Sequence record: MH221129.1
Strand: one strand, 5' to 3'
DNA: 64,000 nt
Both the position numbers and the translations under genes were made by a program. Numbering within the stretch: the first letter of the stretch is position 1; each line of letters starts with the position of its first letter. The notes below the pieces were generated by a model that was not told where the DNA came from, made no database searches, and saw only the letters and a program-made list of their open reading frames with translations. Shown here one piece after another: positions 3,032 through 12,520 of this stretch.

Positions 3032-3576
3032 ATAAGCACCACGTCGTTGAAAGAGTCGCCGATGTGTGTAAAGTATCGGCCGGGATACAGGGATTCAATT
3101 AATCCCGCGAAACCCGTTGGCCCTTCCAGTTCTTTGGATAACAATTCCACCACCGCTGAGAACGCCAGCTGATGCTGTGCATCGTCGCCTTGTGCGGACA
3201 AAAATGTTGAAACGCTTAGTTCGTTAGTAGCAAACGCGTCAGCAACGATAAGCTTATTCATGTCCAGCCCTAACGTTTTCTCTGGCGGTTCAGTCTGCAG
3301 GATATGTAAACCCGAATCGTCGATCACATCACTCCAGTCACCGACCGGATCAAAAGTGTCTTCTGTAAACAGGTCGAGCATCTTCTGCACATCGCGGGTT
3401 TTCACACCGATGATATACGCGTAAGCAAACCGCTGATAAAACTCGCGGATATTGAACTCGTCTATCTCGAGGTTACTCGCCTCCAGTACATGCAGGGTCG
3501 CTTCACGAACTGTTTCGTAAAACTTGCTTGCGCCGTACTGGTTCGCGATGTCTGCCACATCGAACATCACTCTCAT
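3022..3576 (-). CDS. Hypothetical protein (184 aa)
   Basis: ORF, ATGA overlap with upstream gene. Confidence 0.8.
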   Translation of the reverse strand: MRVMFDVADIANQYGASKFYETVREATLHVLEASNLEIDEFNIREFYQRFAYAYIIGVKTRDVQKMLDLFTEDTFDPVGDWSDVIDDSGLHILQTEPPEKTLGLDMNKLIVADAFATNELSVSTFLSAQGDDAQHQLAFSAVVELLSKELEGPTGFAGLIESLYPGRYFTHIGDSFNDVVLICE

Positions 3577-10016: not shown

Positions 10017-10092
10017 TGGCGACTCAGACAGGACTCGAACCTGTGACATATGGATTAACAGTCCACCGTTCTACCAACTGAACTACAGAGTC
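10017..10092 (-). tRNA. tRNA-Asn (GTT)
   Basis: Full cloverleaf, anticodon arm GTGGA-CT-GTT-AA-TCCAT, encoded CCA. Confidence 0.95.
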
Positions 10093-10100
10093 TTAAAGAG

Positions 10101-10176
10101 CGAGCATGTGACAGGATTCGAACCTGCGAGATATCCGATTATGAGTCGGGCGTTAATTCCTCTAACTTCACTGCTC
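10101..10176 (-). tRNA. Degenerate tRNA-Met/Ile2-like (CAT)
   Basis: Good anticodon arm CCCGA-CT-CAT-AA-TCGGA and TTCGAAT T-loop. Acceptor stem is bulged, A at position 8, no CCA. Confidence 0.6.
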
Positions 10177-10177
10177 T

Positions 10178-10284
10178 TGCTTTGACCGGTCTCGAACCGG
10201 CGACCTTCCTCCGCAAGGGTGCTCCACTTTCGTGGATACATTCCCTTTTCTGGAGGGTGCTCTACCTACCTGAGCTACAAAGCC
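10178..10284 (-). tRNA. tRNA-like gene with a 41-nt structured insert replacing the anticodon loop
   Basis: Acceptor GCTTTG/CAAAGC, D-arm GCTC/GAGC, variable loop AGGTC, T-arm GCCGG-TTCGAGA-CCGGT; anticodon loop expanded. Confidence 0.7.
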
Positions 10285-10421
10285 ATTGTACCGTCAACAC
10301 TTGCTGTAGAAGTACCCATCCACAGCAGGGATGTGGGGGAACGCCCAGGCTTCCGCCCAGTCAAGTGAGGTACGAATCTTTCACTTCTGTCATCACTGAT
10401 GGTGACAACGCTCCCATTGTC
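10285..10421 (-). ncRNA. Candidate structured ncRNA between tRNA-Gln and the tRNA-like element
   Basis: Several hairpins, e.g. GACAATG/CGTTGTC and TGCTGTGGA/TCTACAGCA. Confidence 0.35.
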
Positions 10422-10496
10422 TGGCAGTGGCACCTGGATTCGAACCAGGGCATACCGGTATCAAAAACCGGGGCCTTACCGCTTGGCTATACCACT
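10422..10496 (-). tRNA. tRNA-Gln (TTG)
   Basis: Cloverleaf close to enterobacterial tRNA-Gln, CCGGT-TT-TTG-AT-ACCGG, CCA. Confidence 0.95.
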
Positions 10497-10499
10497 AAA

Positions 10500-10576
10500 T
10501 GGTTGTCTCGAGTGGACTTGAACCACCGACCTCCCGCTTATCAGGCGAGCGCTCTAACCAACTGAGCTACGAGACA
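10500..10576 (-). tRNA. tRNA-Ile (GAT)
   Basis: Cloverleaf, CTCGC-CT-GAT-AA-GCGGG, CCA. Confidence 0.95.
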
Positions 10577-10704
10577 TCTGAAAACTGGACCCGATTATTC
10601 CAATGCTGGTTATTCGCATTCGGGTCAACATACGACAATAGGGACTTTAACCCGTCTTCCTCATCCTCGGCTTATCGTGTTCCCGGAGATGTCTTCACAT
10701 AGAG

Positions 10705-10781
10705 TGGCAGGACTGACGGGACTCGAACCCGCGACCTCCGCCGTGACAGGGCGGCGTGAACTCCAACTTCACCACAGTCCT
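10705..10781 (-). tRNA. tRNA-Asp (GTC)
   Basis: Cloverleaf, CCGCC-CT-GTC-AC-GGCGG, CCA. Confidence 0.95.
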
Positions 10782-10785
10782 ACAA

Positions 10786-10866
10786 TGGGTGACACCCCTC
10801 CGAATTGCACGGAGTTCTCAAGGCTGCACAGGCTGAACGATTTACGTACCGCCACTCGGCTTGCCA
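10786..10866 (-). tRNA. Highly degenerate tRNA-like element (possibly His, GTG)
   Basis: T-like arm CTCCG-TGCAATT-CGGAG, loop CT-GTG-CA, ends in CCA; acceptor and anticodon stems imperfect. Confidence 0.35.
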
Positions 10867-10912
10867 GTCTTCATCCGCTGCTCATTGGCTGCAGGAGACA
10901 AGTGTCGTTGTT

Positions 10913-10987
10913 TGGTAGAGCGTACGGGATTTGAACCCGTGTGACAGCCTTGAAAGGGCTGTATCCTTACCGCTAGATGAACGCTCC
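10913..10987 (-). tRNA. tRNA-Glu (TTC)
   Basis: Cloverleaf, CAGCC-CT-TTC-AA-GGCTG, CCA. Confidence 0.95.
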
Positions 10988-10993
10988 GGTAAA

Positions 10994-11078
10994 TGGTGGC
11001 AGGTGAAGGACTCGAACCTACGAAGCCCGAAGGCCACAGATTTACAGTCTGCTCTCGTTGCCGCTTGAGTAACCTGCC
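10994..11078 (-). tRNA. tRNA-Tyr (GTA)
   Basis: Class II cloverleaf with long variable arm, GCAGA-CT-GTA-AA-TCTGT, CCA. Confidence 0.95.
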
Positions 11079-11085
11079 GAATACT

Positions 11086-11280
11086 TTATTCTTCGGGATT
11101 GTCGGTTGGGATGAATTTAATTTTCAAATCGACCAGCTGACCGTCTTCCTGACGAGTCCACTCCAGACTATCCACGCTACATAGGTTAATCCCCATTTGG
11201 TTCGGGATAACATCCAGCGGAAGTGGGGATTCTACTTTGCCGTCAACGATATCGGCGGCAGAAGCTTTGAAGTGTTCCAT
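11086..11280 (-). CDS. Small acidic hypothetical protein (64 aa) inside the tRNA cluster
   Basis: Strong SD GAGGAG, stop 7 nt before tRNA-Tyr. Confidence 0.7.
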   Translation of the reverse strand: MEHFKASAADIVDGKVESPLPLDVIPNQMGINLCSVDSLEWTRQEDGQLVDLKIKFIPTDNPEE

Positions 11281-11299
11281 GTAACTCTCCTCGTAATAG

Positions 11300-11441
11300 G
11301 TGCCGGTGCATCCCGGCTTGTGTACGGCGCACTCAGCTCCCTCGGGCTTATCTACAAGTACACGCTGCCAGGTGCACCGACATATACCACAATAACCTCG
11401 TTAGAAGTCACTCTGGTATTGCTCGTTGCATACTACTGTGG
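11300..11441 (-). ncRNA. Candidate structured RNA (multibranch unit plus long interrupted rod)
   Basis: Nested stems TCGGTGCA/TGCACCGG, CCTGGC/GCCGGG, GTGTAC/GTACAC; second unit closed by CCACAGTA/TATTGTGG. Confidence 0.45.
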
Positions 11442-11511
11442 TTTCACGTAAACGATTTCGCATCGGAATCCGAGTGCATATTAATTATACTAATTAACCC
11501 AAATTAATTTT

Positions 11512-11800
11512 TGAATGAGGGCGATGGACTTCTTCTTCTGAGCCCGGCCGTAAGGTCAGGTCTTAGCGTCTCCAAGCACCGCCCTCTTTCACATAACGCT
11601 GGTAGCGCTCTGGCTACCGGTGGTCGATACCACCCTAACACTGGGAACTCAATCCCATTCGGTCATCCAATTGTATTTTACAGGCGTAGCGAGGCGGCTT
11701 AATGGGCCGGTGCTTGCCTGTCCCCTAGGGACGGTTGTCGTGGAGACGCCAGTCTGTAAGTGGGGCCCTTGCGGGAAAACCCATCGCCTGTAAACCGAAC
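11512..11800 (-). ncRNA. Candidate ~290-nt multidomain ncRNA
   Basis: Three nested long-range helices and several internal hairpins; G-U extensions only on the minus strand. Confidence 0.6.
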
Positions 11801-11889
11801 GTGATTAAAATCCCAGAGTCTAATGCTGGCAATTAAGTCGGCAATAAACCTGAGGATTTCACGCATAATCATTTTCTCGTATCGAATGA

Positions 11890-12080
11890 GTCTATGACCG
11901 GGCAGATACCCAGCATCCTGTACGAGCGACCTGGTGCTTTGTGTATCTGGCTGCTACGGATTTACGGGTATACCGTAGGTCTACGCTGCGTACTGCTGCT
12001 CCCGGCCCATGTGGGACATCAACCCACACAGCCATCAGAAGGTTCACCAGTCATCCACCGTTCCCGTTGCAGCGGGCGCG
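11890..12080 (-). ncRNA. Candidate ~190-nt multibranch ncRNA
   Basis: Closing helix ATGACTGG/CCGGTCAT enclosing TGTGGG/CCCACA, CTACGG/CCGTAG and CAGATAC/GTATCTG stems. Confidence 0.5.
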
Positions 12081-12114
12081 TCAGAATTAGAGGAGGTGGG
12101 CCGAAGCCCACCGT

Positions 12115-12366
12115 TTAGCCTGCACAAAACGACTCATGGACAACACCTGCCGGCAAGTCAGTTCGACCGATACAAGTGACGCTCAGGCGTACGCCGTCAT
12201 CGCAGCCACAAATACACACGTCTTCGTAACACGAGCAGTTGTCAGCCCAATGACCGCTAGAGGGTGGAGTTGCGCGCGCAGCTTTCCGGTTAGGGGCAGC
12301 TACGACTATGGAATCAAACTCATCATAACTCACGCGGTCACGTCGTTCTAACAAATACAAATTCAT
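12115..12366 (-). CDS. Small phage hypothetical protein (83 aa)
   Basis: SD AGGAG; followed by hairpin GGTGGGC-TTCG-GCCCACC. Confidence 0.75.
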   Translation of the reverse strand: MNLYLLERRDRVSYDEFDSIVVAAPNRKAARATPPSSGHWADNCSCYEDVCICGCDDGVRLSVTCIGRTDLPAGVVHESFCAG

Positions 12367-12444
12367 GATATTCTCCTAAGCGAGCGTCTGCGGAGAGCAG
12401 ACAATATTGGCTTTTGGATATATCAAAATCTGTACGGCTAAAAG

Positions 12445-12520
12445 TGGCAGGGGAGACAGGGCTTGAACCTGCAACATTCGGTTTTGGAGACCGACGCTCT
12501 ACCAGTTGAACTACTCCCCC
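12445..12520 (-). tRNA. tRNA-Trp (CCA)
   Basis: Cloverleaf, TCGGT-CT-CCA-AA-ACCGA, CCA end. Confidence 0.95.

Follow-up and report, generated by a model that had tools for sequence, protein, structure and literature searches.

What kind of RNA is encoded in a phage tRNA cluster by a gene which has the outline of a tRNA but carries a long hairpin where the anticodon loop belongs? The question is raised by a locus in the Salmonella jumbo phage SPAsTU (genus Seoulvirus, 250.7 kb), which is analysed here within a stretch of 64,000 nucleotides, the window, which matches record MH221129.1 at 100% identity and whose base 1 lies at approximately base 124001 of that record. A preliminary description of this DNA had offered three readings of the gene: an anticodon-less tRNA mimic, a mini-intron tRNA, or a duplication scar. 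The gene, referred to below as element A, is located within the SPAsTU tRNA cluster on the minus strand, and position i of its RNA corresponds to window position 10285-i. ARAGORN calls seven tRNAs at window 10017–12520 (Asn, Gln, Ile, Asp, Glu, Tyr and Trp), and Rfam adds a weak tRNA with the anticodon CAU at 10103–10174 (31.3 bits), which ARAGORN misses and which is referred to as element B. Window 10177–10284 has no ARAGORN call and no match to the Rfam tRNA model RF00005 even at E ≤ 10, and carries no annotation in the GenBank record of SPAsTU; a covariance model built from the family of related genes does recover it. The features of the locus are as follows:

10285..10289, minus strand: conserved 5′ leader ACAAU directly before G1 (conservation over 16 family sequences)
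10177..10284, minus strand: element A, the whole tRNA-like RNA from G1 to A73, 108 nt (minimum free energy (MFE) z = -4; family covariance model 61.4 bits)
10278..10284, minus strand: acceptor 5′ strand GGCUUUG, G1 unpaired opposite A72 (family covariation of pairs 2-71 to 7-66)
10259..10275, minus strand: D arm, 4-bp GCUC/GAGC, loop with GG (fold; GG loop in all six body types)
10254..10262, minus strand: direct repeat copy 1, GAGCACCCU (RNA positions 23–31, D-stem 3′ strand)
10208..10256, minus strand: arm at the anticodon position, CCUCC/GGAGG base plus extension, 18 bp, GAAA cap at 10231–10228 (fold)
10216..10253, minus strand: 38-nt SPAsTU-specific insertion, 29 unique nt plus the second 9-mer copy (equally placeable at 10225–10262)
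10216..10224, minus strand: direct repeat copy 2, GAGCACCCU (RNA positions 61–69, within the 3′ strand of the new hairpin)
10185..10201, minus strand: T arm GCCGG-UUCGAGA-CCGGU (invariant T-loop residues and covarying pairs)
10177..10184, minus strand: acceptor 3′ strand CAAAGC followed by A72 and A73, without CCA (A72, A73 and G74 in 16/16)
10102..10175, minus strand: element B, tRNA(CAU), with a bulged A in the acceptor and no encoded CCA (Rfam 31.3 bits; always after element A)

Most of the cloverleaf is readily recognised. The D arm, the variable loop AGGUC and the T arm are all present, as had been reported, when the minus strand is read, and the T-loop follows UUCRANY with G53-C61 while the D-loop contains GG. 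The acceptor stem, which had been called canonical, is present (RNA positions 1–7 with 101–107) but has only six pairs: position 1/72 is a G/A mismatch, whereas a decoding tRNA would have seven pairs including 1-72. It is followed by a U8-A9 linker. At the anticodon position, the stem CCUCC/GGAGG (10256–10252 with 10212–10208) encloses 39 nt, in agreement with the earlier estimate of about 40, and these pair as AAGGG/CCCUU, UGU/GCA and UCCAC-GAAA-GUGGA, extending the stem into a long arm with three small internal loops or bulges (4x2, 2x0 and 1x0). There is no 7-nt anticodon loop with U33 on a 5-bp stem. Element A cannot read codons; a long hairpin stands where the anticodon loop belongs. At the 3′ end, A73 is followed by a G and then by the next tRNA, and the absence of an encoded CCA, which had also been pointed out, is borne out. 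The RNA as a whole folds with an MFE of -43.6 kcal/mol, against -29.9 +/- 3.4 in dinucleotide shuffles (z = -4.0; 0/200 as good).

How the hairpin arose is revealed by comparison with relatives. When 50,697 phage records were searched with sensitive blastn settings, 35 were found to carry the element A gene; in all of these but SPAsTU, little or nothing separates the two matching pieces. In SPN3US, JN03, Proteus phage 7, SPFM4 and MET_P1 the acceptor, D and T arms align as the same as those of SPAsTU, and the central arm consists of a 4-bp CCUC/GAGG stem with the triloop UUU, UUC or AUC. When one repeat copy and the 29 intervening nt are taken out of the SPAsTU RNA, 70 nt are left, which is the length of the SPN3US copy; 65/70 are identical to that orthologue, and the centre reads CCUU-GCG-GAGG. 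Judged from this alignment, the 38 nt are an insertion into an RNA that already lacked an anticodon loop. The insertion was found only in SPAsTU among the phage records, IMG/VR and GTDB genomes, and the 29 unique nt have no second copy in the window, other phage records, IMG/VR or GTDB genomes. It is nevertheless highly structured: the arm has an MFE of -22.6 kcal/mol, against -8.9 +/- 2.7 when only the 29 unique bases are shuffled (0/3000 as stable; z near -5), and the MFE structure keeps the acceptor, D and T stems in only 44% of the insert-shuffled versions.

This history bears directly on the mini-intron reading, in which some 38–40 nt would be spliced out to leave a working tRNA. The insert does sit in the anticodon arm, the usual site of tRNA introns, between good cloverleaf flanks. 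The reading is refuted, however, because the insert entered an RNA already without an anticodon loop: the insert-free orthologues have a triloop, and exact removal from SPAsTU leaves the GCG centre given above in place of a 7-nt loop. The earlier judgement that the insert is too short for a group I or II intron also stands, 38 nt falling short of such a core and giving no Rfam intron match. Nor do the internal loops of the SPAsTU arm form a bulge–helix–bulge motif, in which 4 bp must separate two bulges of 3 nt each; bacteria are not known to have the endonuclease that cuts this motif. We see next to no chance that element A is an intron-containing tRNA.

The duplication-scar reading fares better in part. 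The 9-mer does occur in two copies as described, one forming the 3′ strand of the D stem and the other lying inside the new hairpin, so that the insertion is flanked by 9-nt repeats as well as being confined to SPAsTU; it is, however, highly structured and not random, and it lies inside an RNA that was already anticodon-less. A tandem duplication of a 38-nt unit was considered and rejected, as outside the 9-mer (12/14 nt) the alignment of the two halves is no better than that of shuffles (1080/2000 score as well). The native segment that has become the 3′ strand is matched, in inverted orientation, by the 5′ half of the insert, but the copy is imperfect, with two internal loops. Template switching is a documented one-step route to RNA hairpins (PMC8794818). 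A template switch during replication, followed by some drift, is a reasonable origin for the insert, although the clean inverted copy expected of such an event is here imperfect; selection for a closed arm is an alternative origin.

The insert rests on one assembly, MH221129, and it could be asked whether it is an artefact of sequencing or assembly. No sequencing run holding the SPAsTU genome was found (best share of sampled words 0.14), and several SPFM records (including SPFM9, LR535907, locus L005) have rearranged junctions inside the pair formed by elements A and B, near the ends of the records, and such junctions look like artefacts of where an assembly starts or ends, not biology. An artefact would, however, be an unlikely maker of an 18-bp, GNRA-capped coaxial extension with a z near -5, and the flanks of the insert are collinear with relatives. 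We consider an artefact very improbable. The SPAsTU copy is a natural experiment, in which the central arm tolerates a structured expansion of 38 nt. Structured insertions also recur nearby, as one of the body types of the family described below, type C, has a long hairpin in its variable region.

The SPAsTU hairpin is a one-genome curiosity, and the family behind element A is more interesting. The preliminary description had proposed a search of related phages for compensatory changes, and such a search does uncover a family. The position of the gene can be defined as a slot whose occupant ends 1–3 nt before the odd tRNA(CAU) and has the leader ACAAU ahead of it, as is the case for SPAsTU element A. 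A tRNA-shaped gene occupies this slot in Machinavirus Huxley, pSal-SNUABM-04, pEa_SNUABM_6, pEa_SNUABM_10, pEa_SNUABM_43 and Caitlin, and the slot is also filled in the Erwinia Seoulvirus pEa_SNUABM_29 and in phiEaH2; the gene body is strongly divergent among these more distant jumbo phages. Pattern scans of IMG/VR and JGI metagenomes contributed three further distinct sequences, and metagenome contigs hold four loci of the family. No further members were found in GTDB genomes, and unrelated tRNA-Met genes made up most of the IMG/VR matches to the CAU anchor. The family amounts to 16 distinct sequences in six body types, 65 to 108 nt in length and always just 5′ of tRNA(CAU). By these sequence comparisons it is conserved in SPN3US-like jumbo phages, namely Seoulvirus, Machinavirus and phiEaH2-like phages. 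The Wellingtonvirus pEa_SNUABM_11 has a canonical tRNA-Met and no element A.

When folding is constrained, all 16 sequences form the acceptor, the T arm, a central hairpin and a D-like hairpin whose loop contains GG. The central hairpin has a canonical 7-nt loop closed by a sound 5-bp stem in 0/16; its loops are of 3, 4–6, 5, 6, 7 or 8 nt, and body type D has neither an 8-9 linker nor a variable loop. The middle of the molecule cannot be aligned across body types. Central loop length differs even between close relatives (7 nt in Caitlin, 6 in phiEaH2 and 8 in pEa_SNUABM_29), so that the distal end of the arm is unconstrained, a pattern which the SPAsTU expansion fits. The reading of element A as an anticodon-less tRNA-like structure is therefore upheld for the whole family, which lacks an anticodon loop and keeps its acceptor and T stems by compensatory changes. 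Element A is a tRNA-like non-coding RNA, in itself a known kind of RNA. As far as these comparisons can define it, it is a conserved non-decoding member of that kind with a lineage-specific arm expansion, and as such is not described in the searchable literature, in which we found no account of anticodon-less phage tRNA-like genes or of phage tRNA decoys.

Existing annotation of the family is erratic. Two of the orthologues, but not SPAsTU element A, pass the RF00005 cut-off of 29 bits (Proteus phage 7 at 34 bits, and SPN3US at 37 bits with four anticodon-loop positions deleted in the alignment), and the gene is annotated as ‘tRNA-OTHER’ in SPN3US, as tRNA-Asp in Proteus phage 7 and elsewhere as tRNA-Ile(aat), while most records have no annotation at all. 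In SPN3US an open reading frame annotated as ‘hypothetical protein’, SPN3US_0003 (L002:618-854, minus strand), runs antisense to both tRNA-like genes, and SPFM4 has a homologue. A protein-coding reading of the antisense strand was rejected: the length of the insert, 38 nt, cannot be divided by 3, and in SPAsTU the antisense reading frames break inside element A. The frame is therefore not a conserved one, and the SPN3US_0003 annotation is probably spurious. The proteins encoded by neighbouring genes have no tRNA-related domains that we could find, and a promoter and terminator scan found none near element A.

Whether the gene is under selection was assessed from the 16 family sequences. RNAalifold, run on a plain MAFFT alignment of them, recovers the acceptor and T stems unaided, and the paired 5′ strand always starts directly after the conserved leader. 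Eleven acceptor and T pairs are intact in 16/16 and none is broken, and in nine of them both partners have changed; the parser required pairing, so the figure of 100% intact is partly by construction, but RNAalifold found the same stems independently. A covariance-model alignment (A3) that includes ordinary tRNAs was left out of the covariation analysis. Pair 5-68, for example, is UA, CG or AU, and 50-64 is CG, AU or UA; in the T stem, 49-65, 50-64 and 51-63 covary, and 52-62 and 53-61 are invariant G-C. Other positions hardly vary. G1, A72, A73 and G74 are each found in 16/16, as are U54, U55, C56 and A58 of the T-loop, and the leader is conserved at A(-5) in 16/16, C(-4) in 14/16, A(-3) in 15/16, A(-2) in 16/16 and U(-1) in 13/16. 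The invariance of G1/A72, A73 and G74, together with the near-invariant leader, points to selection on both putative cleavage junctions. U(-1) and A(-2) match the leader preferences of RNase P.

These patterns weigh on the view that element A is a functionless relic, an ancestral loop-less tRNA pseudogene left to drift, with the SPAsTU insert as a neutral scar. The gene has no possible decoding role, annotators miss or mislabel it, the middle of the molecule is unalignable between body types, and the insert is confined to one genome. Drift would break stems, yet the 11 pairs remain intact, nine of them by compensation, and little or no change is seen in the T-loop, G1/A72/A73 or the leader. 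Seven sites vary among sequences of the Seoulvirus body type: six lie outside pairs, and at the seventh a C-G is replaced by a U-G wobble, so that pairing is kept; this is a distribution that a drifting pseudogene would not be expected to show. The insert, moreover, is itself strongly structured. The preliminary description would have taken an element unique to this genome for a simple pseudogene, but uniqueness applies to the insert and not to the gene. A plain decaying pseudogene is unlikely, and we hold out little probability for the relic view.

The acceptor end sets element A apart from its neighbours. All seven true tRNAs of the cluster encode the discriminator and CCA, whereas element A does not, and the six window tRNAs parsed by our scan (tRNA-Tyr was not parsed) pair at all seven acceptor positions including 1-72. 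G1 and G2 are present in 15/16 family sequences, alongside the 1/72 mismatch. A 5′ GG with an unstable acceptor end is the signature on which CCA-adding enzymes add CCACCA, marking an RNA for decay; by analogy, a decay signature of this type would fit a disposable module acting in cis. The 1/72 mismatch with G2-C71 and C3-G70 presumably also resembles the acceptor end of initiator tRNA, a likeness that would fit recognition by initiator-specific proteins.

Element A is accompanied throughout by element B. When the junction is re-read, element B starts at the A that follows A73-G, which means that a single base beyond the discriminator of element A separates the two. The acceptor of element B is complete in Machinavirus and has one bulged base on its 3′ strand in Seoulvirus. 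This odd type of tRNA(CAU) was never found without element A, and the junction and spacer between the two are constant while the body of element A varies. In most genomes element B is followed by tRNA-Asn, which is nearly identical across genomes while the element A body next to it is split into six types. The SPN3US-type phages lack the Asn gene; they retain the pair and carry almost no other tRNA. Element B has an AU-rich D stem, and in pEa_SNUABM_6 the tRNA(CAU) (L062:501-595) carries a 24-nt hairpin in its variable region.

Two accounts of the role of element A have to be weighed. In the one we favour, and to which we give about an even chance, it would act in cis as a processing partner of the adjacent tRNA(CAU). 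Transcription would yield a dimeric precursor in which element A precedes tRNA(CAU); the acceptor/T minihelix of element A would be recognised by the host RNase P and 3′-end enzymes, and element A would be cut away. Its selected role would be that of a correctly folding, cleavable module which defines where tRNA(CAU) begins and the context in which it folds. Maturation of tRNA(CAU) would thus require correct folding and cleavage of element A, which would have no part in decoding. The arm at the anticodon position would need to be merely a closed hairpin, free to vary in length and sequence. In SPAsTU it would have gained 38 nt in one lineage-specific event bounded by the 9-nt direct repeat, possibly a template switch in replication, which may have lengthened the arm coaxially and left the cloverleaf undisturbed; the expansion would be tolerated because the central arm need only be a closed helix. 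The six body types have in common the acceptor/T minihelix, the GG of the D-loop and exact junctions on both sides; their tRNA cores and central arms are not shared. RNase P, the 3′-trimming and CCA-adding enzymes, and the enzymes that modify the T-loop are the known readers of this limited set of features. Since the tRNA core differs between body types, only readers at the level of the minihelix, such as processing enzymes, could recognise all of them, and it is for this reason that the cis role is favoured. It is not without difficulties. Ordinary tRNAs mature without an upstream tRNA-like partner, so that a whole cloverleaf may not be justified; the invariant G1/A72 mismatch is not explained by processing, and the dimeric precursors of T4 manage with paired ends; and the fast, compensated evolution of the body equally fits an arms-race decoy.

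The other account is that of a trans-acting tRNA mimic, in which an anticodon-less RNA freed by RNase P would bind a reader of the acceptor or elbow, and so compete with or shield real tRNAs. Candidate targets are a defence tRNase or tail-cutter, a toxin modifying tRNA ends, the CCA-adding enzyme, and initiator-specific proteins reading the 1/72 mismatch. G1, A72 and A73 are invariant where all other acceptor pairs covary, which suggests sequence-specific recognition of the acceptor end; CCA is left unencoded, unlike in the seven real tRNAs; the body has diversified quickly beside the near-identical tRNA-Asn, as would fit an arms race; and the SPN3US-type phages keep the pair of elements despite carrying almost no other tRNA. 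Bacterial defences that target tRNA outside the anticodon loop exist, one of them cutting tRNA tails (PMC12851939), and others cut the anticodon arm (PMC12445682, PMC13056530). Both the invariance of the G1/A72-A73 end and the rapid evolution of the body would be better explained by the mimic than by the cis role. Against it, the tRNA core is strongly variable across body types, which is hard to square with mimicry of one target; anticodon nucleases, the best-known class, need the very loop that is missing; and the literature search brought up no phage tRNA decoy. We regard a mimic as possible but not probable. A bolder form of the idea would make element A a new class of counter-defence or host-manipulation RNA, a free top-half mimic whose G1/A72-A73 end is read by a host factor, the candidates being a defence nuclease that cuts the tail or acceptor, a toxin that modifies the acceptor, or a protein specific to initiator tRNA. 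The arms-race part, or a tuner of stability, would then be the variable central hairpin, to which the GAAA-capped arm of SPAsTU belongs. This version we consider rather improbable.

Several known RNAs resemble element A in part. It shares with the tRNAs of RF00005 the cloverleaf, the GG of the D-loop, a T-loop of the form UUCRANU with G53-C61, the AGGUC variable loop and a location in a tRNA cluster; it differs in that its family has no 7-nt anticodon loop, a G1/A72 mismatch and no encoded CCA. The mascRNA and MEN-beta RNA (RF01684) are likewise tRNA-shaped with a reduced, non-decoding anticodon arm. RNase P and RNase Z free the mascRNA from a longer transcript, and the CCA-adding enzyme then acts on it; element A also recalls its CCACCA signature in the G1 G2 start (15/16) and 1/72 mismatch. 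Known examples are, however, eukaryotic and nuclear with no sequence relation to element A, and the only RF01684 match in the region lies on tRNA-Asp, far below threshold. The tRNA-like domain of tmRNA has an acceptor and a T arm without an anticodon, and a long helix replaces the anticodon arm; element A, at 108 nt, has C3-G70 and not G3-U70, and contains no mRNA-like part, tag frame or pseudoknots, and no tmRNA was called in the region by ARAGORN or Rfam. YrlA (RF02553; found in Salmonella), of which phage-encoded examples have been reported, contains a tRNA-mimicking module without a decoding function, but its ends form a Ro-binding helix where those of element A form an acceptor stem, and there is no Rfam match to it over element A. 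The tRNA cluster of T4 produces dimeric precursors and the stable RNAs C and D, tRNA-cluster RNAs of unknown function. The T4 dimers consist of tRNA-shaped units a few nt apart, with CCA unencoded, that are separated by RNase P, as is proposed for elements A and B; both members of a T4 dimer decode, however, and element A does not. Finally, phage tRNAs with altered anticodon loops are known to escape host tRNases (PMC10264068, PMC11555353). In these the anticodon region is likewise unlike that of the host, but the 7-nt loop is kept and they still decode.

Two explanations of tRNA genes in phages are current, codon supply and escape from anticodon nucleases; element A can do neither. It is nonetheless kept by compensatory evolution across several genera of jumbo phages, even where almost no other tRNA is present. 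Either outcome would be new: a dependency in the processing of a phage tRNA(CAU), or a tRNA mimic acting on host machinery. Such genes are dropped or mislabelled by annotation pipelines.

Expression data are available for SPN3US. Four cDNA-type runs hold this genome nearly whole, and their contigs span the locus orthologous to element A at a depth similar to the flanks; the contigs are unstranded and without local depth, and none ends at the element A orthologue. Some contig ends carry what we take to be a SMART-type template-switch oligonucleotide, which would mark RNA 5′ ends. Candidate 5′ ends (in locus L008) lie at approximately 3402 on the plus strand, about 50 nt before gene 0004, and at approximately 3305 and 2650 on the minus strand. 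The end at 3305 would give a transcript antisense to the tRNA-like pair; it could reflect real antisense transcription or a strand-invasion artefact.

Further structured elements are found upstream of element A. The Machinavirus loci contain an additional T-arm-like motif, GUGG-UUCAACU-CCAC, with possible acceptor-like ends, some 25 nt upstream of element A (L013 at approximately 3300–3320, minus strand, and also L009, L014 and L057), which suggests yet another degenerate tRNA-shaped unit. In SPAsTU a second structured RNA lies upstream at window 10337–10415 on the minus strand, preceded by its own leader ACAAU at 10416–10420 (ACAGU in pEa_SNUABM_29). This RNA, 79 nt long, forms a four-way junction; its terminal stem, GGGAGCG/CGUUCCC, has 7 bp, and a hairpin capped by GGAA stands in the place of a T arm. 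It has no Rfam match, and similar sequence is found in pEa_SNUABM_10 and at loci L056 and L059. In pEa_SNUABM_29 (L012:3240-3318, minus strand), the middle arm of this second RNA is wholly different in sequence and still pairs.
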